A stretch of 64,000 nucleotides of DNA from sequence record NC_028950.1; one strand, given 5' to 3'. Positions 9,221 to 24,751 of the stretch are shown here, in pieces; positions within the stretch are counted from its first letter, which is position 1, and the number at the start of each line of letters is the position of its first letter. The notes under the pieces were generated by a model. The model was given only the letters and a program-made list of their open reading frames with translations, was not told where the DNA came from and did no database searches. Made by a program: the position numbers and the translations under genes.

Positions 9221-10342
9221 ATGAGCGACGTTACTATCACTCCCGTCTCACATGTTTTCGACGAGACCGGCACCCTTGCCGAGAACTACATCGAAAACGA
9301 ACAACGAGATCTGGCACAGCGCAACGTACGCGCTGCTTGCACGCGATACGGTGCTTTCTACATCGAATCGTTCAAGATCCGGGACGCCAACGGCAATCCG
9401 CTTTTGGCGAACCAATACCAGTTTGGTCTGTTCGCAGAAGAACTGTCCGAAAAGACTGGTAAGGAAATCGCAGGTGCGGTGATCATCACCGACCCGGCGG
9501 TGATTTCGCCTGTCTTCATGGACTACCAGTGTGTCGGTGGTCCGTGGGGCGCAACCAATGAGCAGATCATCGATCTGTTCACGGCGTTGATGACTGACGA
9601 CCGTCCTGTGACGTGGCCGAACATTCTGGGTAAACCGGATGGCTTCAAGCCCGCTCACCACTTCCAGGACATCGGTGACCTCTTCGGTGCCGAGTACTTC
9701 GTCAATGCGCTGGAGCGTCTGACGAACGCGTACCTCATGGGCGACAATGCGTCGCACGACGAGATTCTGCGTAACATCGATCAGCTGCGTCAGGACATGA
9801 ATCAGGGCTTGACTGACCTGAGTAATGCCCTGAAGGCATACGCGGATGCAGGCGATGCCCGTGTTCAGGCAAACCTGGATAACGAAGCTCAGATCCGCGC
9901 TCAGGCTGACACGACGCTCCAAGGCAACATCAACGCAGAAGCGACCACGCGTTCAAACGCTGATACGACGTTGCAGAACAACATCAATGCCGCGATCACG
10001 CATGCGGATAACGGCGATGCGACTCTGCAACAGAACATCAATTCGGAAGCAACTGCTCGTCAGAATGCCGATACTGCATTGAACACCAGCATCACTTCGG
10101 TGAACAATGCACTCGCTGCCCACGTGGCTGCGAAGGGTAACGTGCACAGTCTGACTCCGGCTCAGTTGGGCGTCTACACGACCGCACAGGTCGATGCTCT
10201 GATTGCCCAGATCAACAACCAGCTTACCGGCTATGTCAAGAAGAATGCCGGTGAAGACACTTCGCTTACCGTCAGCGGAGGCGTGTTGTATGGCTGGGTG
10301 GGTGGTGCATGGCGTGCAGTGTGGCCGCCCCAGTGGCAGTGA
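9221..10342 (+). CDS. Tail fibre-like virion protein with coiled-coil repeats
   Basis: phiKZ fibre-type N-terminus (WPNILGKPDGFKPAHHFQDIGDLFG), ~18-aa E..R..AD..LQ..I repeats, GNVHSLTPAQLG, C-terminal GGAWRAVW. Confidence 0.7.
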   Translation: MSDVTITPVSHVFDETGTLAENYIENEQRDLAQRNVRAACTRYGAFYIESFKIRDANGNPLLANQYQFGLFAEELSEKTGKEIAGAVIITDPAVISPVFMDYQCVGGPWGATNEQIIDLFTALMTDDRPVTWPNILGKPDGFKPAHHFQDIGDLFGAEYFVNALERLTNAYLMGDNASHDEILRNIDQLRQDMNQGLTDLSNALKAYADAGDARVQANLDNEAQIRAQADTTLQGNINAEATTRSNADTTLQNNINAAITHADNGDATLQQNINSEATARQNADTALNTSITSVNNALAAHVAAKGNVHSLTPAQLGVYTTAQVDALIAQINNQLTGYVKKNAGEDTSLTVSGGVLYGWVGGAWRAVWPPQWQ

Positions 10343-10408: not shown

Positions 10409-10897
10409 ATGACCATGGTCTTGAAAGACATCACATTGGACGATCTACATCTCGACGAACTGTTGTTTCATCCGTACCCGTATGAACAACAGATGGTGAA
10501 GTACATCACCATGGATGGTCGTCAGATGACTCCCTCCAATGCCGAAGAAGTTCTGAAAGTGAAGATGTTCGGCACGATTAAAATTGAAGGCATGGAAAAG
10601 ATCTCGAAGAAGGTCTTTGATGCCCTGAAACAGTTTTCGCATGATGGTCCCGTGACCTGTCATGTGTTTATCGCTGCTGAGAATGCACCTAGCTTTCCGG
10701 ATCACACAGATCCGGATGGCGTACTGATCTATGTCGTCGATGGCGTGAAAAACATGTTCGTCGATGGTAAGTTCATTACGCTCAATGCCGGGCAGTCTGT
10801 TTTCATTCCGCCTGGTACACCTCACCGTGCCGTCAATTACTCTGCTTCCGTGATGATGAGCGTCGGCTTTGAAAAATTCATTGTGGAGAAGCTTTAA
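10409..10897 (+). CDS. Cupin/JmjC-like oxygenase
   Basis: SFPDHTDPDGVLIYVVDGVK ... LNAGQSVFIPPGTPHRA gives an HxD...H facial triad in a cupin fold. Confidence 0.8.
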   Translation: MTMVLKDITLDDLHLDELLFHPYPYEQQMVKYITMDGRQMTPSNAEEVLKVKMFGTIKIEGMEKISKKVFDALKQFSHDGPVTCHVFIAAENAPSFPDHTDPDGVLIYVVDGVKNMFVDGKFITLNAGQSVFIPPGTPHRAVNYSASVMMSVGFEKFIVEKL

Positions 10898-10898
10898 A

Positions 10899-11963
10899 AT
10901 GCATCGCACGGTATATATCAAAACAACGGAGTCGTGCAACCTGAACTGCAAACACTGCTTTACGGGGGGCAACAAACCGAAGCGTGATTTCCTGGACGTC
11001 GAGCGGACCATCGATTGGGTTCGTCGACTCTTTGAACATCTGAACTTCGAAGACCATACACACTTCGAACTCCACGGTGGTGAACCGTTCCTCCTGCCGG
11101 TTAAGCAGTTGAAGGAACTCACTGCAGGTATCCGTACGTGGGGTCCGGTCAAGCACTCGATTGGTGCGACCACGAATCTGGTTTACAAGTTGACGGATGA
11201 ACTGCTCTGGTTCATGCGCAACGATCTGGAAAGCATCGGTACGTCCTGGGATCCGGATATCCGCTTCGCTAATAGCAAGCAGGAAAATCTCTGGCTCGAC
11301 AACCTGAAAAAGGTCAACGAATTCGCAGACGTCACTCTGAACGTCAGCGTCTCTCGTAAGCTGGTTGAGATGAATCCCCAGCAACTGCTCATGTTCCTGC
11401 GGGATCTCGGCGTCTCCAAGGTGCAATTCGAACGTATCACGCAAAACGGAAATGCGAAGAAGAACCTCGCTCTCTTTCCGTCCAATGCAGAAATCAACGA
11501 CTGGTATCTGCGGCTGCACAACGCGTCCGAGAAGCTGAATGCTCGCGACTGGTTCTACAATGCAGCACTGGAAGACGTGTATGCAAAATTCGAAAATGGC
11601 AATGCTTGCTCTGGCACGTTCTGTCGGAATTGCGAAGAAACCATCTTTACGCTCAACGCGGACGGCAGCATTGGCGGTTGCGCCAATTCGGCGCCGGAAG
11701 AATCCTTTGGACACATCGATCAGGACATCGGAGAACTGTTCGACGCCACTGGACGAATCGATAACATTGTTAAGGAGCGCATGCGCAACGAGCAGTGTTA
11801 CGTTTGCCCTGTGGCCGCTCATTGCGGTGGTGATTGCCACCGACTGGCTTGGGAAGGCGATGTGTGTGCAGCACCCCGGCAGCTGATGAAGAAGCTTGCT
11901 GGCTTGCCGATCGACACTCCCGAAGTCCAACCGAAACGTATCATTCCCATCATGGCGGTTTAA
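10899..11963 (+). CDS. Radical SAM/SPASM protein 1
   Basis: CNLNCKHC, HGGEPF, C-terminal C..CRNC..C..CYVCPVAAHCGGDC; start taken at ATG 10899 rather than the ORF-track start 10869. Confidence 0.9.
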   Translation: MHRTVYIKTTESCNLNCKHCFTGGNKPKRDFLDVERTIDWVRRLFEHLNFEDHTHFELHGGEPFLLPVKQLKELTAGIRTWGPVKHSIGATTNLVYKLTDELLWFMRNDLESIGTSWDPDIRFANSKQENLWLDNLKKVNEFADVTLNVSVSRKLVEMNPQQLLMFLRDLGVSKVQFERITQNGNAKKNLALFPSNAEINDWYLRLHNASEKLNARDWFYNAALEDVYAKFENGNACSGTFCRNCEETIFTLNADGSIGGCANSAPEESFGHIDQDIGELFDATGRIDNIVKERMRNEQCYVCPVAAHCGGDCHRLAWEGDVCAAPRQLMKKLAGLPIDTPEVQPKRIIPIMAV

Positions 11964-11969
11964 GGAAAT

Positions 11970-12530
11970 ATGAGTACATATCGCACAGACGTCGACGCCG
12001 TTGCCCAGGCGTACGTACGTAACCAGGTGAACGGGAGCATCAACCCGTACCGCTCGGACTGGGCCCCGGGCTACACGAACACTGGTCTGCTCGGATGGAT
12101 CTCTCAAGATCCGAACCAGTCGCATCCGTCGTGGAATGGCGAACTCAGTACCGCCGGCAATACGATGGTGACCAACCAGGTTCGCAACGCGATGATCGAC
12201 CTGGGCAACTACTACGGTTGGATCGCCAAGGGCCATTACGGTCTGCAGTCGACCAACCAGAGCGGTGCTTCGTATCTGCAATACGAGGGCTACGGCTACT
12301 TCGTGTTCAACGGTGCAGCACCTGGCGCTCAGGATCATGCGAACCGTGTGGCTGCAGATCTGAACACCGCTGGTACGATGAACGGCACGATCCGTTATCA
12401 GTCGCTCATCGACTTCTACAACTTCGCGTGGAGCATCATCTGGAATCGTAAGGACGACCTGCAAGTCGAACTCACGGTTTGCCATTCGTCGTGCCACACC
12501 TCGTGCCACGGCTCCCGCGGTCGTCGTTAA
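11970..12530 (+). CDS. 186-aa protein with C-terminal (C-H-x-S)3 motif; candidate substrate of the radical SAM cluster
   Basis: Ends VCHSSCHTSCHGSRGRR; these are its only Cys residues; AAGGA RBS upstream; G/N/Y-rich body. Confidence 0.8.
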   Translation: MSTYRTDVDAVAQAYVRNQVNGSINPYRSDWAPGYTNTGLLGWISQDPNQSHPSWNGELSTAGNTMVTNQVRNAMIDLGNYYGWIAKGHYGLQSTNQSGASYLQYEGYGYFVFNGAAPGAQDHANRVAADLNTAGTMNGTIRYQSLIDFYNFAWSIIWNRKDDLQVELTVCHSSCHTSCHGSRGRR

Positions 12531-12539
12531 GGAGATATC

Positions 12540-13607
12540 ATGATCAATCTGTTCGATCGTGTCTATCTGCGACACGACAACGTTCTCGCTCGTGGTGAAG
12601 GTCAGCGTAAACTGATCATCAGCCCGAAGGTCAAAGAGATCGCCTACGTCACCGATAAGCTCCAGCAGCAGCAAGCTGGTATTCTCGGTACGTACGAAAC
12701 GCTCGACGACGCAATCCATTACGCTGGCGACATCAATGCGTTCTGGGGTCAGCTGCTCACCAAGGCGAAGATCATCATCATCGCTGACCGTGTGACGGTC
12801 GCTACGTTACTCGTGCAATACTGGAAGGCGATCTTCAAGGATCCGTCGTTCTCCGCTTTGTACCTGCTGTATGAGGTCACGGTGAACAACGAGAACATGC
12901 ATACGCACCGTCCGACGGAAAAGCGCACGCATCTGTTCTCGCCGAACTCGACCGATGGTGAAATCGAAAAGGTTTCCCAGGAAGAGTTCCAGGAAATCTT
13001 CGACAAGAACGAAGCAGCGATGATCGACTTCTCGTCGGATGCTCAGCTGCCCAGCATTCCGTTCGAATATCTGCTGATGTCGTATATCGCAGATCCGAAG
13101 GACGAGCTCGTCAAACGCGTGCTCTTCCAGAAGCTCGACAAGATCATGCGCAGCAACATCGTCGCCAAGCTGATCGGTGGGCGTGAAGAACTCATGTTCG
13201 AATCGCACAACTACTATCTGCTCAACGGCGATGGTCCTGAAGAACTGATCGTCGATCCGATCGCGTACATGAAGAAGTCCGGCCATCTGGATTGGGTCAT
13301 GGACGAATCGTTCGTCTACGGCAACGAAGACGAGATCCTGAAGAAGTATTCGCTGGATCAGATCAAGTTCTTCTTCGAACAGATCAAGCGCCTGGTTCTG
13401 GAAGACGAATCGATCTTCGTAGCAATCGACTGCGTGAAGAATAAGCAGTTCGCTCGTTTGATCGAATTCGACATCGCCGATCATCAGGGTAACTTCTTCG
13501 GCACGGGTGCATTCGTGAACAAGATCAACGGTCTGTTGGTTTCGTTCGCGTATCAACTCAAACGCATGGGGAACGTCAATCTCCTGAAGCAGTACGAACT
13601 GAAGTAA
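12540..13607 (+). CDS. Hypothetical protein within the radical SAM cluster
   Basis: 355-aa ORF, AAGGAG RBS, strong phage codon bias; no motif recognised. Confidence 0.8.
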   Translation: MINLFDRVYLRHDNVLARGEGQRKLIISPKVKEIAYVTDKLQQQQAGILGTYETLDDAIHYAGDINAFWGQLLTKAKIIIIADRVTVATLLVQYWKAIFKDPSFSALYLLYEVTVNNENMHTHRPTEKRTHLFSPNSTDGEIEKVSQEEFQEIFDKNEAAMIDFSSDAQLPSIPFEYLLMSYIADPKDELVKRVLFQKLDKIMRSNIVAKLIGGREELMFESHNYYLLNGDGPEELIVDPIAYMKKSGHLDWVMDESFVYGNEDEILKKYSLDQIKFFFEQIKRLVLEDESIFVAIDCVKNKQFARLIEFDIADHQGNFFGTGAFVNKINGLLVSFAYQLKRMGNVNLLKQYELK

Positions 13608-13613
13608 TTCGAA

Positions 13614-13654
13614 TGCTGCCTGGCTCCTTCGGGAGCTGGGTAGTATCTTTTTTT
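13614..13654 (+). terminator. Rho-independent terminator with cUUCGg loop
   Basis: CTGCCTGGCTCC-ttcg-GGAGCTGGGTAG followed by a T7 run. Confidence 0.75.
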
Positions 13655-13701
13655 CTATTGGTAGGTATTCTTTTTTGACCTATCCCACTGAGGAATACGA
13701 A

Positions 13702-14793
13702 ATGAGCGAAGAGAAGAAAGAATCGACGATTTACCTTCCGTCGACCGGAGAACTGGTGAAAGCAGAAGTCAAAGACATCCCGCCCTGGGAAGAAATTCCG
13801 GAAGTCCTCCACTCGGATTCGGCTTCGACGGATAACCTGAAAGTCGTCAACGACGAACTGGTGTGGCCGAAAGCAGTTGAAGGCACGGAAATCAGCGAAG
13901 GCGACAAAGTCGAAATGAAAGTCGAATTCGCCGGCGGCTGGGGTGCAGAACTCCCGCCCGAGCAACAGACCCCGACGGAACAGCCGGGCATTCCGACCGA
14001 CAAGCTGCGCGAAGTCACCGTGCCTTTCGCAGCAGACAAGATCCGCGAGTACTTCCAGGACAAGTCGCTCTTCTTCATCGCGAACTACAGCGAATCGAAG
14101 CTGAAGGGCGGTGCGTTCCTGACGTACCTGTCGAACATCAACATCCCGTCGGATGTGAAGTTCAATACGCCGATCAGCTACGACGAGTACGCCGAGATCA
14201 TGAAGGCGTACATGGAACAGCCGGGCGTGATCAATTGTGCGGGTCTGCATGTCATGGCAGCTGAAATGCTGCTCGTGGCTAAGGGCCTGCCGTACGAGCG
14301 TTCGCCTTACGCTCTGCCGATCTCCGAAGAGATCCTGAAGAAGTTCATCGAAGAACACAAGGATCTGGTCGAGAAGTGGCTGCATTTCATCGACTCGACG
14401 CAAGTGTTCGCTCTGCGTTCGATCAAGGCACTGAACGACTTCTACAATCCGGATACGCGTTTTCCGACTGTGGAAGATCGCAGCTATGTGGGCTGGAACA
14501 TCGCCCAGCTGTTTCGTATTCCGGAATTCATCGCCGTGTACTTCTCGATCCCGAACGTCGAGTACAAGCTGTCGTACTTCAAGGACCAGTACGAAGAGTA
14601 CATGTTCAAGAACGAGACGCTTGCCAAGTACTTCCAGTCGCAGAACAACTTCGCCGCGTTGTACTTCATGCACTACGCGTCGGGTCTCTTCAAGCCGGAA
14701 GACATCAACCACGGTCTGTTCCGTATCGGCGTGTTCGATCCGGAAAGCGAATTCTTCGAGAAGACGCCGTATGACTTCCGCCTTCAAGAGTGA
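13702..14793 (+). CDS. Hypothetical protein within the radical SAM cluster (acidic, Pro-rich N-terminal extension)
   Basis: GAGGA RBS before ATG 13702; ~364 aa with strong codon bias. Confidence 0.8.
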   Translation: MSEEKKESTIYLPSTGELVKAEVKDIPPWEEIPEVLHSDSASTDNLKVVNDELVWPKAVEGTEISEGDKVEMKVEFAGGWGAELPPEQQTPTEQPGIPTDKLREVTVPFAADKIREYFQDKSLFFIANYSESKLKGGAFLTYLSNINIPSDVKFNTPISYDEYAEIMKAYMEQPGVINCAGLHVMAAEMLLVAKGLPYERSPYALPISEEILKKFIEEHKDLVEKWLHFIDSTQVFALRSIKALNDFYNPDTRFPTVEDRSYVGWNIAQLFRIPEFIAVYFSIPNVEYKLSYFKDQYEEYMFKNETLAKYFQSQNNFAALYFMHYASGLFKPEDINHGLFRIGVFDPESEFFEKTPYDFRLQE

Positions 14794-15871
14794 TTCCAAC
14801 TCTTCGATGACGTTGAAGGACGCATCCCAATACCACTTGAGCCTGAGTCTTGAGTGGTTAAAGGGATGCCAGTTCAACTGTAAGGGATGCCACGTCAACA
14901 AAGACAACGGTATGCCTTTCGACGGTCAGCAGTTGGGTCAGTTGCTAAAGTGGATTGAACAGATGCGAGATCGCGGCAATTACTTGCCGACTATCGTGTT
15001 TCTCCAACCCACTGACTTCCTGACAGCCGACAATACCGCCGACATCCTGAAGAGTCCATACGCCTATGAAGTCCTCTCCGGATTCAAACGTCTGTCTTTG
15101 CAGTCGACGTTCTTGAACATGACGCGTGCGAGAGAGCTTGCCTCGATTCTGAAGGCGCGCTACTACCACATGGAGCTTGAGCTCAACTTCATCATTGAGC
15201 CGGAGAAGGTCAACAACGAAAAGTATCTCGAAACGATTCGTGCAAATCGCGATGAGTTCATCGAGTTGCTGGACTGGAAGAAGCATGTAGCGTCCTTCGC
15301 CATCATGAACGTCTATGAATACGATCGGGTGAAGAAGAACGACGTGAAGGCTATCCTGGCTGATTACCAGGCTCTCCACGACAAAGTCAAGGAGAAGTTC
15401 GATTCCACCATTGACTTCAATTTCTCCATGACACGTAACCCGTGGTGGAGTAATGAAGACGTAGCAGATGCTGTACGCAGCGTTAGCCGAATCTTCGACG
15501 GTGGAGTCGATAACGTTTTCAACCAGACCATCCGGTTCTCCTTCGGTAAGCTGGAAGACTCGTCAATCGAAAAGCATTACAACTGGCATCAGGGACATTT
15601 TTACGTGTCGCCGATGATCTATGAACGGATCGCTTCGTTCCATCCGAAGTTAAAGATTCCACACACGCTGTATTCTGTGCTGGAAACCGAAGACTTCGAG
15701 CGCCGGTTGCTGATCGATCAGTATCACAACTCCGAAACCAAGACCGAGTGCAATTCGTGTCGATATCAAGCCTCTTGCATTGAGCGCAATGTCCTGACGT
15801 TTATGGACATGCACGAGATCAAGGACTGCATCATCGCCCGCAAAGCTCTCGATGCCATTAACGTCATCTGA
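14771..15871 (+). CDS. Divergent radical SAM-like protein 2
   Basis: CQFNCKGC and C-terminal CNSCRYQASC; start at ATG 14771 or 14807; the ORF-track extension to 14486 is the shadow of the upstream gene. Confidence 0.75.
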   Translation: MTSAFKSDSNSSMTLKDASQYHLSLSLEWLKGCQFNCKGCHVNKDNGMPFDGQQLGQLLKWIEQMRDRGNYLPTIVFLQPTDFLTADNTADILKSPYAYEVLSGFKRLSLQSTFLNMTRARELASILKARYYHMELELNFIIEPEKVNNEKYLETIRANRDEFIELLDWKKHVASFAIMNVYEYDRVKKNDVKAILADYQALHDKVKEKFDSTIDFNFSMTRNPWWSNEDVADAVRSVSRIFDGGVDNVFNQTIRFSFGKLEDSSIEKHYNWHQGHFYVSPMIYERIASFHPKLKIPHTLYSVLETEDFERRLLIDQYHNSETKTECNSCRYQASCIERNVLTFMDMHEIKDCIIARKALDAINVI

Positions 15872-15875
15872 GACG

Positions 15876-15905
15876 CATATGGACTGCCCGCGGGCAGTCC
15901 ATATG
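15876..15905. terminator. Perfect palindrome inside the radical SAM cluster
   Basis: CATATGGACTGCCC-GC-GGGCAGTCCATATG between two co-oriented genes; terminator or RNA processing/stability hairpin. Confidence 0.55.
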
Positions 15906-15920
15906 TCCTGTGAGGAATGT

Positions 15921-16943
15921 ATGAATAACGAAATCCTGAATGAAATGCTGTCGTCCAAAGTGCAAGACAGCACCGAGATCGAACACCACCTGTTCGAGTA
16001 CTGCAACCTGAACTGCTCGTTCTGTGGTCAAGACCATGACTCGAAGGTCGGTATGGAATCGATCATCGATAAAGCACACAAGACGGTCGACTTCATCTTC
16101 CATTCGAAGAAGAAGAAACACACCATCAACGTGATGGGTGGGGAGATCTTCAATGACAAGATCGAACCACGCGCCTTCTCGGATTATTTCCAGTTCTACG
16201 AAATCATCCGTAAGACGTGTCAGGATCTGGGCGTGGAATTCCAGATCAACTGGGTCACGAACCTGATCTTCACGGAAAACCGTGAGAATGTTCTGTGGCT
16301 CATGAACAAGACCGGCGAGCATTCCAAGATCTCCACGTCGTATGACTTCGCTGGTCGCGGCCTGGACATCAATCGTTCTCTGGTGTTCAAGCACAACCTG
16401 AATCTGTTCAAGAAGGATATCGGCGTTGTTGGTTTCGTTCTCACGAAGCCGGCTATCCGTAAACTGATTAACAGTACGGACATGTTCTTTCAGACTGTCC
16501 TGTATCCGAACTTCCCGTTGTATTTCGATTGGTACGTCCCGGAGAAATCCTCGAACAAGATGATGCCTAGCGAGCAGGAAATGCTCGATGCGCTTCTCTT
16601 TGTCGCCGACAAGTATCCGAACATCGAACCGGTTAAGTCCATGCTGGAGAACGAGCACAACAAGATGACGTGCTTCAGCCTGAACAAGACCACCATCCTG
16701 CCTGACGGTAAGGAAGTCACTTGTCGCTACCTCGAATACGACAAAGAAAAATTTAACAACGTCATTGATTATTCGAGCAATGCCAACATCATCCAGGCTC
16801 ACCTTGATAGAAACGAATGCTATTCGTGTAATTTTTACAACCGCTGTCAGTTTCGGTGTTTCGTTCAAGCAGATTGGACTGAACTCGAACGACTCCCCAG
16901 CTGTTTCATCAAAACCTTTTTCGAGCGAACTGTCGGATCATGA
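15921..16943 (+). CDS. Radical SAM protein 3
   Basis: CNLNCSFC, MGGEIF, C-terminal CYSCNFYNRCQFRC; GAGGA RBS before ATG 15921. Confidence 0.88.
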   Translation: MNNEILNEMLSSKVQDSTEIEHHLFEYCNLNCSFCGQDHDSKVGMESIIDKAHKTVDFIFHSKKKKHTINVMGGEIFNDKIEPRAFSDYFQFYEIIRKTCQDLGVEFQINWVTNLIFTENRENVLWLMNKTGEHSKISTSYDFAGRGLDINRSLVFKHNLNLFKKDIGVVGFVLTKPAIRKLINSTDMFFQTVLYPNFPLYFDWYVPEKSSNKMMPSEQEMLDALLFVADKYPNIEPVKSMLENEHNKMTCFSLNKTTILPDGKEVTCRYLEYDKEKFNNVIDYSSNANIIQAHLDRNECYSCNFYNRCQFRCFVQADWTELERLPSCFIKTFFERTVGS

Positions 16944-17476
16944 AAATCTTTCTCATCGCAGCTGAAGCCGCAAACAAGGTCATCGGTAATAACGGCAAAA
17001 TGCCGTGGCACCTTCCTGAAGATCTTGAACATTTCAAGGACGTGACTGTCGGCTCGGCGGTCATCATGGGTCGCAAGACGTGGGAATCGATCGGCTCACG
17101 ACCGTTGCCTGCGCGTAAGAACATCATTGTCTCCCGGCAGATGGACGCTGGATGGGTTGCTCCGGAAGGCGCATTCCGTGTCCAGAGCCTCAAGTCGGCA
17201 ATCAAGAGCCTGATGGTCGCCGGTTACGAGCATTGCTTCGTGATCGGTGGCGAACAACTGTATCGTGCAGCTATGCCGTGGGCTTCGATGATCATGCTCA
17301 CGAAGCTCTACAAGTCGTACGAAGGCGACGCTCGCTTCCCGGATATCAGCCCATTGGAATGGCGTCTGACCGCTTCGACGCAATACTTCGAAGCATCACA
17401 GCCTTTCTCGGTTCAAACCTACTATCCCATCAACGAGCCTGACGTGGCTAAGTGGGTCGACCTTATCAAGGATTAA
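16940..17476 (+). CDS. folA: Dihydrofolate reductase
   Basis: VIGNNGKMPWHLPEDLEHFK, VIMGRKTWESIG, PLPARKNIIVSR, VIGGEQLY, EGDARFP. Confidence 0.95.
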   Translation: MKIFLIAAEAANKVIGNNGKMPWHLPEDLEHFKDVTVGSAVIMGRKTWESIGSRPLPARKNIIVSRQMDAGWVAPEGAFRVQSLKSAIKSLMVAGYEHCFVIGGEQLYRAAMPWASMIMLTKLYKSYEGDARFPDISPLEWRLTASTQYFEASQPFSVQTYYPINEPDVAKWVDLIKD

Positions 17477-17477
17477 C

Positions 17478-18089
17478 ATGGACATCACGCTGACTGCCCT
17501 GATTTACAACAATCTCGTTATCGGCGGCAAGAACGAACGCCCCGACTTTGTCGGCCAGCACGCCAGTTACATCGGTGATCTTCGTCATCGTGTTGTTGTG
17601 ATCGGCCGTAAGACGTACGAGGCCATGAACGAAGCAAAGCTTGGCAAACGTACGTTGGTCCTCAGTCGTAATCACGAGTATTACTCGGAAGGCGCGACCA
17701 CCGTCCTCGATCCGGCTGCGGCGATCATGATCGCAAGCGACATGGGCGAGAGCGAACTCGTTGTCTTCGGCGGCGCACAGACCTTTCATGCGTACATGCC
17801 GTGGGCATCGAAGATTTGTGTTACGCAGTTCAAGCGTGATCGCGAAGGCGAGATGAAGTTCCCGAAGTTCCCGTGTCATTGGCACGCACCTGTCTGGGAT
17901 TCTCAGACGCTAGATGAAGATGGTGTCGTGCTTCAGTCATTGACGTATCGTCGTTGGCCCGACGGCGTATATCCGGACGAAACTCCGGAGGAGAAGGCGA
18001 TGACGGCTGTCTTGAACGCGTCGCACAGGCGACTCGGCTGGCGTCCGCTTCTCACACAGGAATTGCGAGATCAGCAACGTTCCGAATAG
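17478..18089 (+). CDS. Divergent second DHFR-fold protein
   Basis: Retains VIG, VVVIGRKTYEAM, RTLVLSR, VFGGAQTF and EGEMKFP, but lacks the MPW loop and the conserved folate-binding acidic residue. Confidence 0.75.
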   Translation: MDITLTALIYNNLVIGGKNERPDFVGQHASYIGDLRHRVVVIGRKTYEAMNEAKLGKRTLVLSRNHEYYSEGATTVLDPAAAIMIASDMGESELVVFGGAQTFHAYMPWASKICVTQFKRDREGEMKFPKFPCHWHAPVWDSQTLDEDGVVLQSLTYRRWPDGVYPDETPEEKAMTAVLNASHRRLGWRPLLTQELRDQQRSE

Positions 18090-18103
18090 ATGAAGAGTAA
18101 GTA

Positions 18104-19180
18104 ATGAACCATCCCTCGTTGATCATCAAACCTACGGAAGCGTGTAACTTCAAGTGCACGTTCTGTTCGTCTACCGATATTCAAGGCGATTCTCCTAACC
18201 TGGATATCGAGTATATCAAGCTTTACCTGGAGCGTTTCCCTCAGACTCCAACCATCATCGTGAATGGTGGTGACCCTCTGATGATGAAGCCTGAGTACTA
18301 CTGGGCGATCTTGAAGATCATCGAGGACATGGGTCTGAAAACGACACTCTCGTTTACAAGCAATCTGTGGGCTTTCTACAAGAAGCCTAGCATGTGGGTG
18401 GATCTGTTTCGCCATCCGCTTGTAGGGGTCTCTACGAGCTTCCAATACGGTAATTCACGGCTTAAGGGCGACCTCACTCCGTTTACCGAGGAAGAGTTCT
18501 GGGAAATCTCCGACATGATGCTCGAAATGGTCGGATATCGTCCTTCCTTTATCGCAGTCATCACGAAAGAAAATGAAGATAGCGCGATCAAGACTGTCGA
18601 GCTTGCTAAACAGATGGGTGTTGTCTGCAAGCTTAACTATGCAATGGCGTCGGGACCTAAGACGCAATTCAAAGGCATCACCATCGGTAATGCAGACTCC
18701 ACCTACGTCCTTGCGGATATCTACGAAAAGTATATCGAGATCGCTGAAGCGGGTCTCGCGCCGTGGGAACATAACACGACGGTCATGATTAACAGGCTGA
18801 AGGGCCTGCAGAACCAGATGTGCCCTCAGGCTCGTCAGTGCGATGAAGGTATTCGCGCCTTGCAGCCTGGTGGCAAGTATTACAGCTGTGGTGCGTTCGG
18901 AGACGACGGATTATATCCTATCGACTTCGCCAATGAAATGGCGGGAGGTTTCGAAACACCTCTTCGTTATCAGCCTGAGCTTCAATCGCTCAAGGACAGC
19001 TGCTTCGAGTGCCCGATGTTTGAAATCTGCAACGGGTGTCGTAAGACCACGCACGATCTAAAACGTCTTGACCTAGTGGAAACACACTGCTCCAAGATGA
19101 AGACGCTTGCTCCGAAAATCATTGAACTGAATGGGTTGACTGGAAAGCTTATTCCGACGCCCTATGTCAAGGAGACATGA
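18104..19180 (+). CDS. Radical SAM/SPASM protein 4
   Basis: IIKPTEACNFKCTFC, NGGDPL, C..C..YYSCG..CFECPMFEICNGC..C. Confidence 0.9.
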   Translation: MNHPSLIIKPTEACNFKCTFCSSTDIQGDSPNLDIEYIKLYLERFPQTPTIIVNGGDPLMMKPEYYWAILKIIEDMGLKTTLSFTSNLWAFYKKPSMWVDLFRHPLVGVSTSFQYGNSRLKGDLTPFTEEEFWEISDMMLEMVGYRPSFIAVITKENEDSAIKTVELAKQMGVVCKLNYAMASGPKTQFKGITIGNADSTYVLADIYEKYIEIAEAGLAPWEHNTTVMINRLKGLQNQMCPQARQCDEGIRALQPGGKYYSCGAFGDDGLYPIDFANEMAGGFETPLRYQPELQSLKDSCFECPMFEICNGCRKTTHDLKRLDLVETHCSKMKTLAPKIIELNGLTGKLIPTPYVKET

Positions 19181-19725
19181 TGGAACTGCTTCAGCCTTGG
19201 AAAACCAGCATCGGCAAAATGTCTGTCCTCGATTTCGTGGATATCGATGCGATGCTAAACGAAGTCATGCAACACCCGATGGTGATGGAGAATCCGCGCA
19301 ACGGAGCACTTCGGGTGAAGTATGAAGAGTTTCCGATCTGTTCGGATGTGCTGGAACACAAGCTCAAGCCGGAAGTCGAGAAGTACATCGAAATGTTGGG
19401 TGGTCGTCCGCCCAGAGGTCTCGCATGGAGTAGCTGGTTTCACATCTGCATGCATGGTAACGGATTGATTCCGCACTACCATGACGAGGCACTGAATTCC
19501 GTTCTGTATTTTACAACGTCGAAGGCTAATCTGGTGCTACGCGATCCCCTGTCCTCACAAGCCAGGCAGTGGCCGCAGGACATGCGCAAGAAGATGCACG
19601 CCGACCAACAGTTTCACCCAGTCAAGGGAGACTTCCTGATGTTCCCGGGATACGTCGACCATTATGTCATGGCCGATGAACCGGACTTCCGGATCTCCAT
19701 GGCTACTGACTGGATTTTCAGGTAA
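19177..19725 (+). CDS. 2OG-Fe(II) oxygenase (HxH type)
   Basis: LIPHYH..SVLYF..LRDP..GDFLMFPGYVDHYV..RIS. Confidence 0.8.
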   Translation: MMELLQPWKTSIGKMSVLDFVDIDAMLNEVMQHPMVMENPRNGALRVKYEEFPICSDVLEHKLKPEVEKYIEMLGGRPPRGLAWSSWFHICMHGNGLIPHYHDEALNSVLYFTTSKANLVLRDPLSSQARQWPQDMRKKMHADQQFHPVKGDFLMFPGYVDHYVMADEPDFRISMATDWIFR

Positions 19726-19730
19726 ACAAC

Positions 19731-20672
19731 ATGCTAGCTAACGAATCCGGGATCCTTAACGTCTCGTTGAATCCCACGTACTACTGCAACTTCCGTTGCG
19801 ACTTCTGCTACCTCACGAAGAAGCAGTTGAATACGCAGAACTACCTGCCGATCGACGGGATCCGTAAGCGTTTCCTGGATATCGTTAACTCCGGCCATGA
19901 AATCGGTCACGTGGATCTGTACGGTGGGGAAGTGCTGCTTCTCCCCAACGAGTATTTGCTCCAGATCGCTGACCTGATGCAGGAATTCGCAGTCGAGGAT
20001 TGCGAGATCATCACCAACCTGTCTGCCTACAAGAAGCAGGTAGTCGAAGATCTGCGTTTCGGTATTTCCGTGAGCTACGATTTTGAACATCGTGCTCAGC
20101 ACGAGCATGTCTGGCAGAACATGCTCAAGATCCCCCGTGAGTTCACGATCCTCACGCTTGGCATTCCTGAAATCGTCAAGCGAGATCCGGCTGAACTCAT
20201 CGAACAGATCAACCTGCTGGAGAATTGCAAAGCCTGGGAGATCAAGCCTTACAGCAAGAACCAGGCTAACCAGCTTGATGTGACCGATGCTGAGTTCGAA
20301 GAATTCGTCAAGAAGATCATCGAGTACCCGAACAAGAAGTTCGAGTTCCTCAATGAGACGAAGCTTCGGACCATCAAGTTCCGTGACTACAACGCGTTCT
20401 CCGACAACCACGTCTACATCACGCCTAAGGGTAACTTCGGTGTGCTGGAGTTTGACGAGAACGATCGTGAGTTCTTCCTTGAACTGAAGACCATGGACCA
20501 ATATGTCATGTGGACTCAGGGTGAGAAGGCTCGGGTCATGAGTAACGAAACCTGTGGTAGCTGCCAGTACATGGGCAAGTGCGCTTCCGAGCATCTGCGG
20601 GAAGTCAAGTCCATGCAAGACGGCTGCAACGGCTTTTACAATTTGATTTCTTGGTTCGAGGCCCGGTCATGA
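19731..20672 (+). CDS. Radical SAM protein 5
   Basis: NPTYYCNFRCDFCYL, LYGGEV, C-terminal CGSCQYMGKC..C. Confidence 0.88.
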   Translation: MLANESGILNVSLNPTYYCNFRCDFCYLTKKQLNTQNYLPIDGIRKRFLDIVNSGHEIGHVDLYGGEVLLLPNEYLLQIADLMQEFAVEDCEIITNLSAYKKQVVEDLRFGISVSYDFEHRAQHEHVWQNMLKIPREFTILTLGIPEIVKRDPAELIEQINLLENCKAWEIKPYSKNQANQLDVTDAEFEEFVKKIIEYPNKKFEFLNETKLRTIKFRDYNAFSDNHVYITPKGNFGVLEFDENDREFFLELKTMDQYVMWTQGEKARVMSNETCGSCQYMGKCASEHLREVKSMQDGCNGFYNLISWFEARS

Positions 20673-21229
20673 GCGTGAGTAACCTTTGGAGTACCCCCAT
20701 CGGCGAACGTAATCTGGAACCAAAGGTTACGTTCTACAAATTGCTGGATGAAGTAATGAGTCACCCGGCAATCATGCGTGACGTGAAAGTCGGTTCGCTT
20801 CGTATTTCGGACCGCAAGGACGAATTCCCTCAATGCACTCAGTTCATCGAGAATCATCTTCAGGATGAACTGAAAGGCTACGTGTACCAGGAGTTCGGTC
20901 ACCGCGTTAAGGGTGTGAGGTGGTCGGCCTGGATTCATACATGCTTTCGTGGTACGGGTTTGGTTCCGCATTACCACATGGGCGATGAGCACTTCGCTAG
21001 TGTTCTGTATCTGTCGGAGTCGAAGGCATCTCTGATTATCCGGGATCCTCGGGCCAACATGGTTCGCAACTTTCCTCAGGAAATCCTGAAGACGAATTTT
21101 GCGGATTACAAGCTCGATCCTCGCCCTGGCGATTTCGTGATGTTCCCCACTTACCTCGATCATTACGTGATGTCGGATGAACCTGACTTCCGCGTTTCGA
21201 TCGCTATCGATTGGTGTCTCGATGATTAA
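20669..21229 (+). CDS. 2OG-Fe(II) oxygenase (HxH type), paralogue of 19177-19725
   Basis: LVPHYH..SVLYL..IRDP..GDFVMFPTYLDHYV..RVS; start ATG 20669 overlaps the previous stop. Confidence 0.8.
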   Translation: MSVSNLWSTPIGERNLEPKVTFYKLLDEVMSHPAIMRDVKVGSLRISDRKDEFPQCTQFIENHLQDELKGYVYQEFGHRVKGVRWSAWIHTCFRGTGLVPHYHMGDEHFASVLYLSESKASLIIRDPRANMVRNFPQEILKTNFADYKLDPRPGDFVMFPTYLDHYVMSDEPDFRVSIAIDWCLDD

Positions 21230-21890
21230 CCCTCTGAAGCAAGAAGACGTCGACCGTCTGAAAGAAACGACGAAAGTCGCCCCCATCACACTCGAACGCA
21301 AGCCGTTCAATTCGACCGACTTCCTCGGCGACTACCTGACGAAGGGGTTCTACTCCTTCTCAGCCAAGCATCTCATGGCGCCCATCGAAATCCAGCGTTT
21401 CGAAGTCGTCACGGTGAAACACGAAGACAACTGCTTCCATGCAGAAGGTCATGAGTTCCACAACGACTACATGCGTCTGTCGATCGAACAACTCGGTCGC
21501 GATCTGCGTCGCTGGCTCCATGAAGTGCCGGTCGAACTCACATTCGACTTCTTCGCGGAATCGGTCAACGATCACGTGCAGCACTGGCATAGCGATGCGC
21601 AATACGCGATGCCGGAACAGAACGCAACCATCAACTGCTTTTTCGACAATACGTCGGAAACGCTCGGTGGTCGTTTCGACATGGCTCCGTACAGCGCGGA
21701 CATCATCGGCACGAAGAAGCTCCCGGGCTACTTCACGTCGATCTATCCGCAAGCTTACGACGTGATCATCTTCAACCAGAACCGGAACTTCCTGCATAAG
21801 GCGGTGCCGTCGGTTGCTAAGCGTCGTATGGTTTCGTTCGCGGCAACGTTTGCCGACATCAACCCTCTTCTCCCGAATTGGCAGCCATGA
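21222..21890 (+). CDS. 2OG-Fe(II) oxygenase (HxD type, prolyl-hydroxylase-like)
   Basis: WHSD..INCFFD..LGG..IIFNQNRNFLHKA..RR. Confidence 0.7.
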   Translation: MINPLKQEDVDRLKETTKVAPITLERKPFNSTDFLGDYLTKGFYSFSAKHLMAPIEIQRFEVVTVKHEDNCFHAEGHEFHNDYMRLSIEQLGRDLRRWLHEVPVELTFDFFAESVNDHVQHWHSDAQYAMPEQNATINCFFDNTSETLGGRFDMAPYSADIIGTKKLPGYFTSIYPQAYDVIIFNQNRNFLHKAVPSVAKRRMVSFAATFADINPLLPNWQP

Positions 21891-22468
21891 TCGACACAGG
21901 CGAATTCATCAGCGAGTATTTGACCAAAGGCTTCTATCGTTTCGATGCTTCGGAGGTTCTCTCCAGATTCGATATCAAGGCTTTTGGGACGATCAAGAAA
22001 ACGGACGCAACGTTCGACACGGAAGATCCGAAAGAGCGCTACAAGGCTTATACGCCAGCGCAAACGGTACTCCTGCGTCAATTGTTGAAGGATATCTCTG
22101 AAGTCTACTTCAGCGACCTCAACCACGAGCTCCGTTTCAACGATATGTGGGCGTCGGCGAACCCGTACACCTACTCCTGGCACAACGACACGCTGCGTTG
22201 CTGGCCTGGCTTCAACAGCAATGTGAACTGCTATTTCGATAGCATGGATGAATCGATCGGCGGTGCGTTGCAGATGCACCCGATGGTGGAAGATTACGAT
22301 TCGATCGCCGACGACAGTCCGTTGATTGCGGAAGTCTTCCCCCAGAAGTTCGACATCATCGTCATCAATCAGAACAGCACGTTCCTGCACCGTGTCCGTC
22401 ATACGGAAGAGAAGCGCACGATGCTCTCGTTCGCAGCAGGCTTCTTCGACTTCAACCCGGTCTTCTAA
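21878..22468 (+). CDS. 2OG-Fe(II) oxygenase (HxD type), paralogue of 21222-21890
   Basis: WHND..VNCYFD..IGG..IVINQNSTFLHRV..KR. Confidence 0.7.
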   Translation: MAAMIDTGEFISEYLTKGFYRFDASEVLSRFDIKAFGTIKKTDATFDTEDPKERYKAYTPAQTVLLRQLLKDISEVYFSDLNHELRFNDMWASANPYTYSWHNDTLRCWPGFNSNVNCYFDSMDESIGGALQMHPMVEDYDSIADDSPLIAEVFPQKFDIIVINQNSTFLHRVRHTEEKRTMLSFAAGFFDFNPVF

Positions 22469-22470
22469 TC

Positions 22471-22890
22471 ATGCAAGAATGGAAGATGTGGCAGGAGATG
22501 TACAACAACCTGGTAACCGATCACTCGGATGCCGGACATAAACACCTGCGAGAGATCCGTGATCTGACTGTCGAGAATGCGCTCTTCTACATTCTTGAAC
22601 AGGCGGGTTATGGAATCTATCCTGCCAAGTCCTACATGGTGGCGATCATCTATGCCACCAAACTTCAGGAAGTTTATGGAGAGGATTTCTACGAGGTTCT
22701 GGATGATCCGGAGCTTCTGTACGGGCAGGATGATTTCTTTGTTCCGTACTCGCAAAACAAGGCGTTCTACGATGAACTCATCGAAGCTCTGAAAACGATT
22801 CCGAACTGGATCGAGAAAGGATGGGCTCCGAAGACAGTCGAGTACTTCCACTTGGAGTGTACTGAAGCGGGCGTAGCATCGATCAGCTGA
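22471..22890 (+). CDS. Hypothetical protein closing the radical SAM cluster
   Basis: 139-aa ORF in the same operon; YPAKSYMVAIIYA motif of unknown function. Confidence 0.7.
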   Translation: MQEWKMWQEMYNNLVTDHSDAGHKHLREIRDLTVENALFYILEQAGYGIYPAKSYMVAIIYATKLQEVYGEDFYEVLDDPELLYGQDDFFVPYSQNKAFYDELIEALKTIPNWIEKGWAPKTVEYFHLECTEAGVASIS

Positions 22891-22921
22891 TCCTATAGTG
22901 TCCGACTAACAGGGGATTATA

Positions 22922-23230
22922 GTGGGCTTCGATCTCACCAAGCTGAACACTGCCTTTCAGACACTGACCACGTGGGTAACTGCTGGTCTGTCGAAGAAAG
23001 CAGACGCAACTGCGACATCCAATGCACTGGCCACTAAAGCCAATGCTACGGATCTCGCAACCACCAACACAAATCTGTCGAACCTCACGACCACCGTGGG
23101 AACGAAGGCAGATGCGACGGCAACGTCGAACGCACTGGCTACGAAGCAGAGTACGGTCCTCACGGGAACGGCTGCTCCTGCTGCTGGTACAGGCAATAAC
23201 GGGGACGTGTTCTTCGTCACCGATACCTGA
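22922..23230 (+). CDS. Small fibre-like protein (KADATATSNALATK repeats)
   Basis: Direct repeat of KADATATSNALATK; ends GTAAPAAGTGNNGDVFF, a motif typical of fibre proteins. Confidence 0.65.
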   Translation: MGFDLTKLNTAFQTLTTWVTAGLSKKADATATSNALATKANATDLATTNTNLSNLTTTVGTKADATATSNALATKQSTVLTGTAAPAAGTGNNGDVFFVTDT

Positions 23231-23238
23231 TGCACAGA

Positions 23239-23272
23239 CATATACTCCTGGGCGCAAGCCCAGGAGTATATG
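23239..23272. terminator. Hairpin between convergent genes
   Basis: CATATACTCCTGGGC-gcaa-GCCCAGGAGTATATG. Confidence 0.75.
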
Positions 23273-23283
23273 CTCTATGTCTG

Positions 23284-23973
23284 TCATGCCGAACCGTTGT
23301 ACCAGTTGTTTTCCCAGATGAAACAGGGAATGGCGATTGCTGCATTCGGGTCACCTGTACCCGTTCCAGCTGCACCGGACGGATAGGTAACACCAACGTT
23401 CTGTTCCGTAAGAGGAGCAGAGCCTACTTTACCGATCAGCAGATATGCCGAACGATATGCGAAGTTGGCATTGCCGTAGATTCCGGAAGTACCGCCAACG
23501 CGATACACAGCTGCAGGCAGGCTGTTTCTCAGACGACCGCTATACGGCTCATCGTAACTCACCAATGCAAACAACTGACCATTCGGCATTGCGTTCAGAT
23601 CGTTAGTGAGTCCGTCGATCTGACCAGTCACTACCGGGTTGGTGTTGTTTTGCAAATACTGATCTTCGCCAAACACGTCGTATTGCTTGGAGAAAATCAT
23701 GTTCCCGTACTTGTCGAACTGGATCAGGTTATAGCTCCGACCTGCCGATTCGATTTGCACACCATCCATCCAAATGCCTTTGTTAGCAGCAGGATAGATG
23801 GTCTGAGAAAGTCCGAGAGCGAAGATCGAGTAGTTATGTCGCCCGAACGTTTGCTTCCAGACTCCGCCTTGTTTGACATATGCTGCATTTACGCGCTTCC
23901 AGGCCCCGGATGCTTTATAGAAGATTTTGGCAACATGATGCCAGGCACCTGCTGCTTTAGAATAAATGGTCAT
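23284..23973 (-). CDS. Putative tail accessory protein: GxWK repeats plus ILEI/PANDER-like lectin domain
   Basis: N-terminus GAWHHV..GAWKRV..GVWKQTF; GRSYNL..YDVF..LNAMPNGQLFALVSYDEP..YRSAYLLIG resembles the ILEI domain. Confidence 0.65.
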   Translation of the reverse strand: MTIYSKAAGAWHHVAKIFYKASGAWKRVNAAYVKQGGVWKQTFGRHNYSIFALGLSQTIYPAANKGIWMDGVQIESAGRSYNLIQFDKYGNMIFSKQYDVFGEDQYLQNNTNPVVTGQIDGLTNDLNAMPNGQLFALVSYDEPYSGRLRNSLPAAVYRVGGTSGIYGNANFAYRSAYLLIGKVGSAPLTEQNVGVTYPSGAAGTGTGDPNAAIAIPCFIWENNWYNGSA

Positions 23974-24034
23974 AATGCTGTCTCAGGTAAATGATCATAA
24001 AATCTTGTGACAATGCTGCTTTTTAGGAAACGAT

Positions 24035-24751
24035 ATGTTAACGCCAATGATGATGTCGAAGAAGAAAGGTATAAATACGGTACTGCTTCTTCGATTCAAT
24101 GGCAATGTCGTCGTAGACGCGAGCGGACGCCATTCACCATCGGTAGTGGGCGGGCCCGGTTTCAGTACGACAAATGCCAAATTCAATACCGCACTAAGCC
24201 TCAATGGTGCAAACCAACGTATCACCATCGCCGATGCGCTTTCGGATTTCCTGTTCAATCCGACTCAAGCATTCACGTTCGAAATGTGGGCCAAGTTCAA
24301 TTCCTGGACACCCTCAGGTGGCGGTAGTCAGAACACGATGTTCGGCATGTTCAAGACATCTAGTCCTGGAACAGTTGGCGGTAACCGGTACAGCATGAAC
24401 TATAGCAGTTCCGGTAATGCTACGATTTATAACCAGTCGAGCGCATCGAATCTGATCTACGCTTCATCGCCAGATACCACAGGCGTGTATCACCACTACG
24501 CTCTATGTCGTGATACGAGCGGTAATATCGCTTACTATATCGATGGGATTGTTCGAGGAGCTACGCCTCCCTATACCGACAACAATACCTGGATTGCCGA
24601 TGTTCTCGATGTAGGCGGTAGCTCTGCATTCAATTCGACCCCCAATGCTTATTTCGAAGAAGTCCGCGTTAGCCGAGTTCGTCGATATACGGGAGGTAAT
24701 CTGGGCGCTGCCAACTTTACGTTACCTTCTGGTCCTTTTACGCTAGATTAA
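24035..24751 (+). CDS. LamG/concanavalin A-like lectin-domain protein
   Basis: VLLLRFNG, AFTFEMW, YHHYALCRD..YYIDG, YFEEVRVSRVRRY. Confidence 0.75.
   Translation: MLTPMMMSKKKGINTVLLLRFNGNVVVDASGRHSPSVVGGPGFSTTNAKFNTALSLNGANQRITIADALSDFLFNPTQAFTFEMWAKFNSWTPSGGGSQNTMFGMFKTSSPGTVGGNRYSMNYSSSGNATIYNQSSASNLIYASSPDTTGVYHHYALCRDTSGNIAYYIDGIVRGATPPYTDNNTWIADVLDVGGSSAFNSTPNAYFEEVRVSRVRRYTGGNLGAANFTLPSGPFTLD

Follow-up and report, generated by a model that had tools for sequence, protein, structure and literature searches.

A candidate protein-maturation cassette in Ralstonia phage RSL2 and unrelated jumbo phages, centred on a protein with a conserved Cys/His/Ser tail

The gene block and its tail protein

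In this study, we examined a block of 16 genes in Ralstonia phage RSL2 whose products include radical S-adenosylmethionine (SAM) enzymes, putative oxygenases and a small protein with a conserved C-terminal Cys/His/Ser tail, and we relate it to its counterparts in other phages and in bacteria. RSL2 has a genome of 223,932 bp, belongs to the genus Chiangmaivirus and is phiKZ-related according to the literature. The window analysed is a stretch of 64,000 nt from record NC_028950.1, identical to RSL2 over its matched length (100%), in which positions 10409-22890 correspond to record positions 72409-84890 and to open reading frames (ORFs) ORF066-081. As described in an original prediction made from the DNA letters, these are 16 tightly packed genes, all on the + strand, with intergenic gaps of -8 to +94 nt. 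We refer to ORF066-081 in order as g1-g16, to the preceding ORF064 and ORF065 as f1 and f2, and to compared loci by L-numbers. Block proteins were searched for domains with Pfam and NCBIfam, to which PHROG, PDB profiles, AlphaFold2 (AF2) models and Foldseek were added.

The protein at the centre of the block, and its tail, are encoded as follows:

11970-12530, + strand: g3 (ORF068), tail protein of 186 aa, with a variable alpha/beta body and a disordered C-terminal tail
12480-12527, + strand: the tail, 16 codons for three C-H-x-S units and R-G-R-R, stop codon next; single match in the window

The 186-aa product with its Cys/His-motif ending had been singled out in the original prediction, and the ending is exactly as quoted there. 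Shuffled sequence led us to expect no occurrence of this motif in the window, against the one found. In the AF2 model of g3, the body is a confident alpha/beta fold (predicted local distance difference test, pLDDT, 86) and the tail is disordered (pLDDT 45-57), which would make it accessible to enzymes. Foldseek found no significant match to this model in the PDB (best E 0.23); in BFVD, the model matches the tail proteins of other phages, including gp170 of Agrobacterium phage Atu_ph07.

To follow the tail beyond RSL2 we used a degenerate DNA pattern that was fixed on the Cys, His, Arg and stop codons only, all other columns being left free. It matched at least 120 stretches in IMG/VR, where by our own arithmetic about 0.001 would be expected by chance, and 27 stretches in species-representative genomes; counts of tail loci and tail columns given here are among the matches listed from these two sources. 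At the free columns, Ser was present in 150/150 tails at positions -13 and -9 and in 143/150 at -5, and Gly in 134/150 at -3. The 143 distinct 48-nt tails draw on both Ser and both Arg codon families, with TGT and TGC near-equal and the His codons about equally used. Since Cys, His, Ser and Arg thus remain invariant through synonymous codon changes, selection acts on the peptide and not on DNA or RNA.

Searches at the protein level gave a congruent picture: the bodies of relatives diverge past detectable similarity, while the last 16 residues stay near-identical. A profile search of 1.84 billion representative proteins returned 586 tail-protein clusters at 50% identity, and among the best 150 of these 586, 140 carry exactly three units followed by R-x-R-R and 8 have the middle unit replaced. 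Across the family, candidate substrates are 112-309 aa long and consist of a folded body that varies and a C-terminus that is conserved. Some departures from the three-unit format were seen. In the group with a replaced middle unit (P0054-P0060, P0084), a short Pro-containing segment stands in its place, the first C-H-x-S and the final H-S-S/A-R-G-R-R being kept, and one such gene (L155) still lies downstream of a cupin and a radical SAM gene. The tails in L141 and L145 have four units, and a tail ORF on a Dysosmobacter segnis contig (L140) has about 15 C-H-x-S units arranged in modules before its R-G-R-R.

Enzymes and partner proteins

The enzymes of the block, including two dihydrofolate reductase (DHFR) genes and four assigned to the 2-oxoglutarate (2OG)-Fe(II) oxygenases, are:

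10409-10897, + strand: g1 (ORF066), small cupin (Cupin_2, 4.8e-12) with a metal triad
10899-11963, + strand: g2 (ORF067), radical SAM/SPASM enzyme, C13/C17/C20 and eight conserved C-terminal Cys
14807-15871, + strand: g6 (ORF071), radical SAM enzyme, one auxiliary cluster motif; conserved C21/C25/C28 (84/84 orthologues) and four C-terminal Cys (81/84)
~15921-16943, + strand: g7 (ORF072), radical SAM/SPASM enzyme, CxxxCxxC in 59/59 orthologues and seven C-terminal Cys; start uncertain, ORF opens at 15852
16940-17476, + strand: g8 (ORF073), dihydrofolate reductase (DHFR_1, 2.1e-48)
17478-18089, + strand: g9 (ORF074), divergent DHFR-fold protein (DHFR_1, 1.2e-17)
18104-19180, + strand: g10 (ORF075), radical SAM/SPASM enzyme (Radical_SAM, 3e-12), eight C-terminal Cys
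19177-19725, + strand: g11 (ORF076), 2OG-Fe(II) oxygenase (PF13759, 34.2 bits, cut-off 27)
19731-20672, + strand: g12 (ORF077), radical SAM enzyme with one auxiliary cluster motif (Radical_SAM, 2.1e-8), C19/C23/C26 and four C-terminal Cys in 37-38/38 orthologues
20669-21229, + strand: g13 (ORF078), 2OG-Fe(II) oxygenase (PF13759, 37 bits), conserved His and Asp in 17/17
21222-21890, + strand: g14 (ORF079), probable 2OG-Fe(II) oxygenase (PF13640, 15.5 bits, below cut-off)
21887-22468, + strand: g15 (ORF080), probable 2OG-Fe(II) oxygenase (PF13640, 17.6 bits, below cut-off), H99-x-D101...H168 in 14/14 orthologues

All five proposed radical SAM proteins (g2, g6, g7, g10 and g12) indeed combine CxxxCxxC with a C-terminal CxxCxxxxxC, and both motifs are conserved in orthologue alignments, the cluster cysteines being kept in 78-80/80 orthologues of g2, 57-59/59 of g7 and 47-48/48 of g10. 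Their description as SPASM/twitch-like is equally apt: g2, g7 and g10 have the full SPASM pattern with eight, seven and eight C-terminal Cys, and g6 and g12, with four each, are twitch-like. The SPASM model TIGR04085 scores 30.2 bits for g2 (cut-off 27) and 20.3 bits for g10. With PF04055, g2, g10 and g12 exceed the cut-off and g6 and g7 fall short of it, so that for the latter two the radical SAM assignment rests on the conserved motifs. The best conserved enzyme of the set is g10, with 55-57% identity in phages DT01, Atu_ph07 and Phosso and matches in viral contigs down to E 1e-153. For ORF071, the RefSeq start at window position 14912 cuts off the CxxxCxxC motif and an ATG at 14807 fits better; this start explains why the record labels the product "hypothetical".

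Family-profile matches of g2 in the PDB include the anaerobic sulfatase-maturating enzyme (anSME), 5wgg (CteB-type) and 8vpo; these come from the family profile only, as single-sequence phmmer searches with g2 and g10 found no match in the PDB. In NCBIfam and the PDB, the nearest neighbours are SPASM enzymes that modify peptides or proteins, namely PapB, DynA, YhhB, anSME and 5wgg.

The non-radical oxygenases had been given as a JmjC-like cupin and four 2OG-Fe(II) enzymes. That g1 is a cupin is clear, and its triad of H99, D101 and H139 is invariant in an alignment of 60/60 orthologues; as to the JmjC part of the description, JmjC_2 matches at 24.9 bits over profile positions 89-122 alone, corresponding to the last 34 residues of g1, and in the PDB generic Cupin_2 proteins rank first, with MINA53 at 2.6e-3. 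Judged by its sequence, g1 is likely to be an Fe(II) oxygenase. Among the four 2OG-Fe(II) enzymes, g11 and g13 are confirmed by PF13759, and the matches of g14 and g15 to PF13640 are weak; the last two cluster as one family, which recurs in 35 loci. Both suggested DHFR folds are present, g8 clearly so and g9 in divergent form.

Three further genes encode the partner proteins:

12540-13607, + strand: g4 (ORF069), phrog_36207, function unknown
13702-14793, + strand: g5 (ORF070), conserved partner with a disordered N-terminus and a folded domain of ~260 aa
22471-22890, + strand: g16 (ORF081), conserved 139-aa protein, phrog_20737, function unknown

These had been listed as three unknown proteins, and sequence-profile searches with g4, g5 and g16 gave no match in Pfam, NCBIfam or the PDB. 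The folded part of g5 is modelled with confidence (AF2 pLDDT >90 over residues 100-350), and Foldseek found nothing significant for it in the PDB (best E 0.06); its top match, an HpcH aldolase at probability 0.63, was too weak to use as a fold assignment. We also considered whether g4 and g5 are degenerate radical SAM homologues and rejected this (hhalign probability <1%). Family and structure searches, as the original prediction had proposed, identified the enzyme domains and were uninformative for g3, g4, g5 and g16.

Distribution and gene order

If the enzymes act on the tail protein, the two should travel together, as had been suggested. Loci were picked by the tail motif alone and their ORFs searched with the window proteins; for gene distances we used the 49 loci with at least 2.5 kb of flank on both sides. 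In 49/49 of these loci, the distance from the tail gene to a radical SAM gene is at most 2.5 kb, and in 41/49 the two are immediate neighbours. Homologues were found in 87 tail loci for g2, 85 for g5, 67 for g1, 65 for g10, 61 for g7, 40 for g12 and 20 viral loci for g16, and in fewer loci for the oxygenases; in the 67 loci with g1, it sits upstream of g2.

Two layouts recur. In type A, the order is cupin, g2, tail gene, g5, g4-like gene, g7, g10, g12 and g16, with oxygenases interspersed, and this order is present in viral contigs as well as in Atu_ph07, Phosso and DT01. Here g2 is in most loci directly 5' of the tail gene, and from this position and its family it is a candidate for the primary maturase of the tail. 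In type B, two tandem tail genes of ~126 aa are followed by four to six g6-type radical SAM genes, with a block of cupin, g2, g10, g12, g16 and g7 nearby. An independent look-up of precomputed Pfam calls showed the same cassette picture. As to the three partner families, whose co-occurrence had been put forward as a check, those of g5 and g16 recur in fixed order, g16 mostly 3' of a g12-type enzyme, and that of g4 does so more loosely, the g4-like family coming after g5 in other cassettes. In some cassettes, a B12-binding radical SAM enzyme of ~520-570 aa lies between the g7- and g10-type genes (among others, L055, 4475-6022; L152, 13889-15445); the RSL2 cassette has no such gene. The B12-binding class of radical SAM enzymes includes C-methyltransferases.

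The distribution also bears on whether the enzymes might instead act on nucleotides, DNA, tRNA or folate-linked metabolites, with the Cys/His protein a bystander. The presence of two DHFR genes inside the RSL2 block invites such a view, and papers on RSL2 relatives, which merely list the block genes as accessory, in two cases place the DHFR genes under nucleotide metabolism. Yet DHFR homologues were found in 0 of ~150 other tail loci and are confined to the RSL2 clade, so that g8 and g9 are a clade-specific insertion outside the cassette, and we rejected DHFR as a member of the pathway on these grounds. Moreover, no nucleotide-modifying family was detected in the cassette, and the radical SAM genes track the tail gene and not nucleotide genes. 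We therefore regard this explanation as hardly credible.

Among 50,697 deposited phage genomes, the cassette occurs only in nine phages of the RSL2 clade and in Atu_ph07, Sinorhizobium phage Phosso and Pseudomonas phage pPa_SNUABM_DT01 (DT01), which bears out the view that it is not part of the phiKZ-like core. In the latter three, which are unrelated jumbo phages, g2 orthologues have 35-44% identity and the gene after g2 encodes a protein of 178-306 aa with a like tail and otherwise dissimilar sequence. Outside phages, 16 of the 27 genome matches are in Bdellovibrionota bins (within L125-L151), some on contigs of 0.3-1.3 Mb, with the same partner genes in shuffled order; g16 is found in several of these loci. 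In such predatory bacteria the cassette may be chromosomal or prophage-borne.

The tail protein in virions

Evidence that the tail protein becomes part of the particle comes from Atu_ph07. Its published virion proteome lists the orthologue gp170 at 31.89 kDa with 8 unique peptides and 35% coverage (PMC6102473 Table S5). This protein was detected in gel bands 1-9 and was most plentiful in band 1, at the very top; for other proteins of 30 kDa the peak is in bands 7-8, and for those of 117-137 kDa it is in band 2 (PMC6102473). The masses that we computed equal those in the table (tail protein 31.89, gp176 66.07, gp177 21.66), confirming that the gene numbering agrees. Radical SAM enzymes, cupin and the g5 homologue gp169 of Atu_ph07 are all absent from the virion list (PMC6102473). 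Of the original suggestion that the Cys/His protein is probably a virion or receptor-binding protein, the virion part is thereby supported. The published loading buffer lists no reducing agent (PMC6102473), so the high apparent mass of gp170 may reflect disulfides, another covalent link or a stable assembly.

These data are relevant to two further explanations of the tail. In the first, the tail stays unmodified and forms a metal or iron-sulfur site of three Cys-His pairs, the protein serving as carrier or scaffold for neighbouring iron enzymes that act elsewhere. Three Cys and three His at regular spacing would suit such a site, as would the iron dependence of all the neighbouring enzymes and the fact that no modification has been observed. 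Nevertheless, the Ser that ends each unit and the R-G-R-R vary no more than Cys and His do, which ligation alone does not explain; packaging in Atu_ph07 virions without the enzymes is odd for an enzyme helper; and enzymes with SPASM domains typically have peptides as substrates. We consider this explanation rather improbable.

In the second, a small product such as a cofactor, chelator or antibiotic would be cut from the C-terminus, leaving the body as a large leader. The location of the tail at the extreme C-terminus is in keeping with this, and the peptide-derived cofactors that SPASM enzymes make show this arrangement of an invariant core beside numerous redox enzymes. However, the cassette has no recurrent protease or exporter family, conservation of the body is unlike that of leader peptides, and the body is folded in the model and incorporated into virions. 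We give this possibility little credence.

Flanking genes and genomic context

The genes and features around and within the block are:

7137-9209, + strand: f1 (ORF064), fibre-like structural gene; N-terminus matches phrog_2163 (virion structural) and phrog_13857 (tail protein)
9221-10342, + strand: f2 (ORF065), fibre-like virion structural protein; RefSeq "virion structural protein", phrog_2163 5.8e-88, phrog_8147 tail fiber
13613-13646, + strand: terminator-like hairpin in the g4/g5 gap, 15-bp stem with 7 G-C pairs, T run 3'
23284-23973, - strand: weakly ILEI/PANDER-like gene of 229 aa, carbohydrate-binding type
24047-24751, + strand: Laminin_G_3/ConA-like lectin gene, carbohydrate-binding type
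24794-25588: endolysin, after the lectin gene

That the block follows two tail-fibre genes is upheld by the PHROG matches of f1 and f2 to tail or virion structural families. A fibre-like gene had also been expected after it; instead, we found the ILEI-like gene on the - strand, followed by the ConA-like lectin and the endolysin. Homologues of f1 lie upstream of the cupin in L003, L006, L028 and L063 and upstream of f2 in L118; f1 is context that travels with the cassette in some phages. More generally, the cassette is mostly found downstream of large structural or fibre-like genes: homologues of f1/f2 precede it in several contigs as well as in RSL2 and DT01, the series in many viral contigs of type A is DUF4815 giant protein, phrog_473 virion protein, weakly fibre-like gene, and one Bdellovibrio bin has a Peptidase_S74 fibre-type gene directly upstream. 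Downstream, other loci contain tail-fibre-like and fibre-assembly-like genes.

The hairpin occupies the sole sizeable intergenic gap in the block and, as a predicted element, may divide the cassette into a unit of cupin, g2, tail gene and g4 and a remainder. A sigma-70 promoter scan gave fewer matches than in shuffled sequence and is uninformative for RSL2.

Proposed pathway

Taken together, we think it reasonably likely that ORF066-081, minus the DHFR genes, is one copy of a conserved, horizontally mobile maturation cassette, and that its tail protein is modified by the enzymes and built into the virion. The original notion of a multi-enzyme pathway acting on the Cys/His-tail protein is supported, with the DHFRs removed, by co-occurrence, and the presence of the tail protein in the virion of a distant phage makes it probable that this is an enzyme-modified virion part. 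The alternatives considered are each less consistent with the invariant Ser and Arg, with the lack of protease and exporter genes, with the virion location or with the DHFR distribution.

Late in infection, the tail would be recognised directly by the adjacent SPASM enzyme g2 together with the cupin g1, after which g6, g7, g10, g12 and the 2OG-Fe(II) oxygenases would rework it. The chemistry would probably comprise cross-links through side chains of the His-x-Ser triplets and/or, at Cys, changes of thioether or oxidative type, together with hydroxylations, with g4, g5 and g16 as putative non-catalytic helpers. The matured protein would then be incorporated in the virion near the fibre or baseplate apparatus, and the enzymes left in the cell. 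The tail as substrate, its chemistry and the role of the matured tail are what we infer from the pattern as a whole; candidate roles are metal binding, covalent anchoring and contact with the host envelope.

Several points weigh against this interpretation. On no family member has a mass shift or cross-link been seen, and a Cys3His3 tail could bind metal without modification; the gel position of gp170 could stem from disulfides. In the RSL2 record, ORF065 and not ORF068 is tagged as a virion protein. None of the block enzymes reaches the cut-off of a curated maturase family in NCBIfam, so the chemistry is unreadable from homology, and the want of an informative fold or family match extends to g3, g4, g5 and g16. 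Finally, five to nine enzymes exceed what known systems need for a 16-residue tail, so some may have other substrates.

Going a step further, one may speculate that jumbo phages and predatory Bdellovibrionota share a new prosthetic group, a cross-linked Cys/His tail built by radical SAM enzymes, metal-binding or covalently linking, on a fibre-associated particle or surface protein, which would serve to attach to or breach the Gram-negative envelope, with the variable body adapting to each lineage's partner or target. We offer this as a doubtful, if specific, proposal.

Significance

Maturation of peptides and proteins by radical SAM enzymes has been described for bacterial natural products, for cofactors and, recently, for an anti-phage system. 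In the literature, we found no published case of a virus tailoring its own particle protein with a battery of radical SAM enzymes and no published description of this cassette; none of the papers joins radical SAM, jumbo phage and peptide made by ribosomes and modified after translation (RiPP), and a broad jumbo-phage survey makes no mention of radical SAM. Cyanophage S-SCSM2R also has a radical SAM gene, which forms part of another set of genes.

The cassette is widespread, with at least 120 viral contigs and 586 protein clusters, and among cultured jumbo phages it occurs in four groups that are unrelated. It offers an unusually sharp, testable substrate motif and three conserved families without known relatives, and predatory bacteria are enriched for it. 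Should the modification be real, it would represent new enzyme chemistry on His/Cys/Ser motifs and a novel principle for assembling virions or recognising hosts, and would provide a marker for annotating many "hypothetical" jumbo phage genes. This may have practical application, since phages of the RSL2 clade are studied for biocontrol of Ralstonia and Burkholderia plant diseases, which makes the composition of their adsorption apparatus of interest.

Comparison with known systems

HXS (HxsA/B/C/D) is a bacterial anti-phage system in which a +8 Da change at S-H-R-S-S, attributed to the radical SAM partners, is needed for function (Nat Commun 2026;17:3910, PMC13128918). Like it, the RSL2-type cassette groups a His-x-Ser repeat protein with radical SAM enzymes of its own and a small helper protein, and the tandem His-Xaa-Ser arrangement is present as three H-x-S triplets, with Ser in 150/150, 150/150 and 143/150 of the tails. 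In contrast to HXS, a Cys stands before each RSL2-type triplet, the array lies at the very C-terminus with R-x-R-R after it, and cassettes have 3-9 radical SAM genes plus cupin and 2OG oxygenases. Further, no peptidoglycan-binding domain and no HxsD were found in the RSL2-type cassette, its tail protein is packaged in virions (Atu_ph07), and it occurs in phages and Bdellovibrionota bins, whereas HXS is mainly found in Gammaproteobacteria.

Could the cassette then be a phage-borne counterpart of HXS that blocks DNA entry by competing phages, or one that counters the HXS of the host? The combination of His-x-Ser units and dedicated radical SAM enzymes, known from HxsA/B/C (PMC13128918), and weak NCBIfam similarities of g7 to HxsB and g10 to HxsC would agree with this. 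Yet these similarities amount to 19.2 bits against a cut-off of 370 for HxsB (TIGR03978) and to 31.5 bits, over the N-terminal core alone, against 267.9 for HxsC (TIGR03977); for HxsA and HxsD, there was no NCBIfam match among g3, g4, g5 and g16 at E<=0.01 and no PADLOC match. PADLOC matches reach no further than the radical SAM core, and we rejected membership in a defence system. In addition, no signal-like segment was seen at the N-terminus of the sequences inspected, and structural modules surround the cassette. We consider a role as HXS counterpart very unlikely. Of the comparison with HxsA first drawn for this locus, the H-x-S triplets stand and family membership does not, which leaves an analogy.

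A second group of relatives are the SPASM peptide maturases (ranthipeptide PapB, dynobactin DynA, YhhB, FxsB, GrrM and XyeB types), with which the block enzymes share CX3CX2C and a SPASM domain of seven to eight Cys; in NCBIfam, these are the closest neighbours of g2 and g10 over the full length. Aromatic-x-x three-residue cross-link motifs are a known substrate type, and His-x-Ser fits this format. The block enzymes nevertheless score 10-50 bits against cut-offs of 300-650, and the triceptide-type models are far under their cut-offs of 310-450 (YhhB 46 bits, FxsB 33, GrrM 23, XyeB 16). The substrates differ as well, being short leader-core peptides in these systems and folded proteins with a variable body here. 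The label RiPP-like, under which the block was first described, fits loosely, because the substrate is a folded protein of 112-309 aa; no PqqD/RiPP recognition element, leader protease or exporter/transporter family was found in the cassette genes scanned.

A closer parallel in the kind of substrate is anSME, a SPASM enzyme that targets a short motif within a protein of full size, where it generates a functional group, and 4k36-4k39 are among the best PDB matches of the g2 profile (8e-9). Their alignment with g2 covers the N-terminal 100 residues only, and the anSME model TIGR03942 gives 45 bits against a cut-off of 349. The last tail unit resembles the sulfatase motif (C/S-x-P/A-x-R) in having Cys at i and Arg at i+4 and differs at the middle position, which in the tail is Gly in 72, Ser in 37, Thr in 26 and Ala in 4 of 143. 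For prokaryotic viperins (pVip), the best score was 48 bits, with the NCBIfam model at 45.6 against a cut-off of 180; these matches span the first ~100 residues, except that of g12 to PDLC02904 (residues 16-236, 29.7 bits).

The nearest parallel in position is found in Ralstonia phages RP12 and RP31, whose cassette lies directly after the f2 orthologue (in RP12, ORF073, E 3e-54) and has a small protein whose C-terminus is rich in His/Tyr, with three radical SAM genes coming next. In RP12 (L157, AP017924), these span 19418-29998, with a small protein of 125 aa and a DUF3050 gene. Unlike in RSL2, there is no C-H-x-S tail, the small protein has no detectable homology to g3, and the enzymes, including DUF3050, are others, which the g2 and g10 searches missed. 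An alternative cassette after the same structural gene suggests that this position is a hotspot for alternative radical SAM cassettes.

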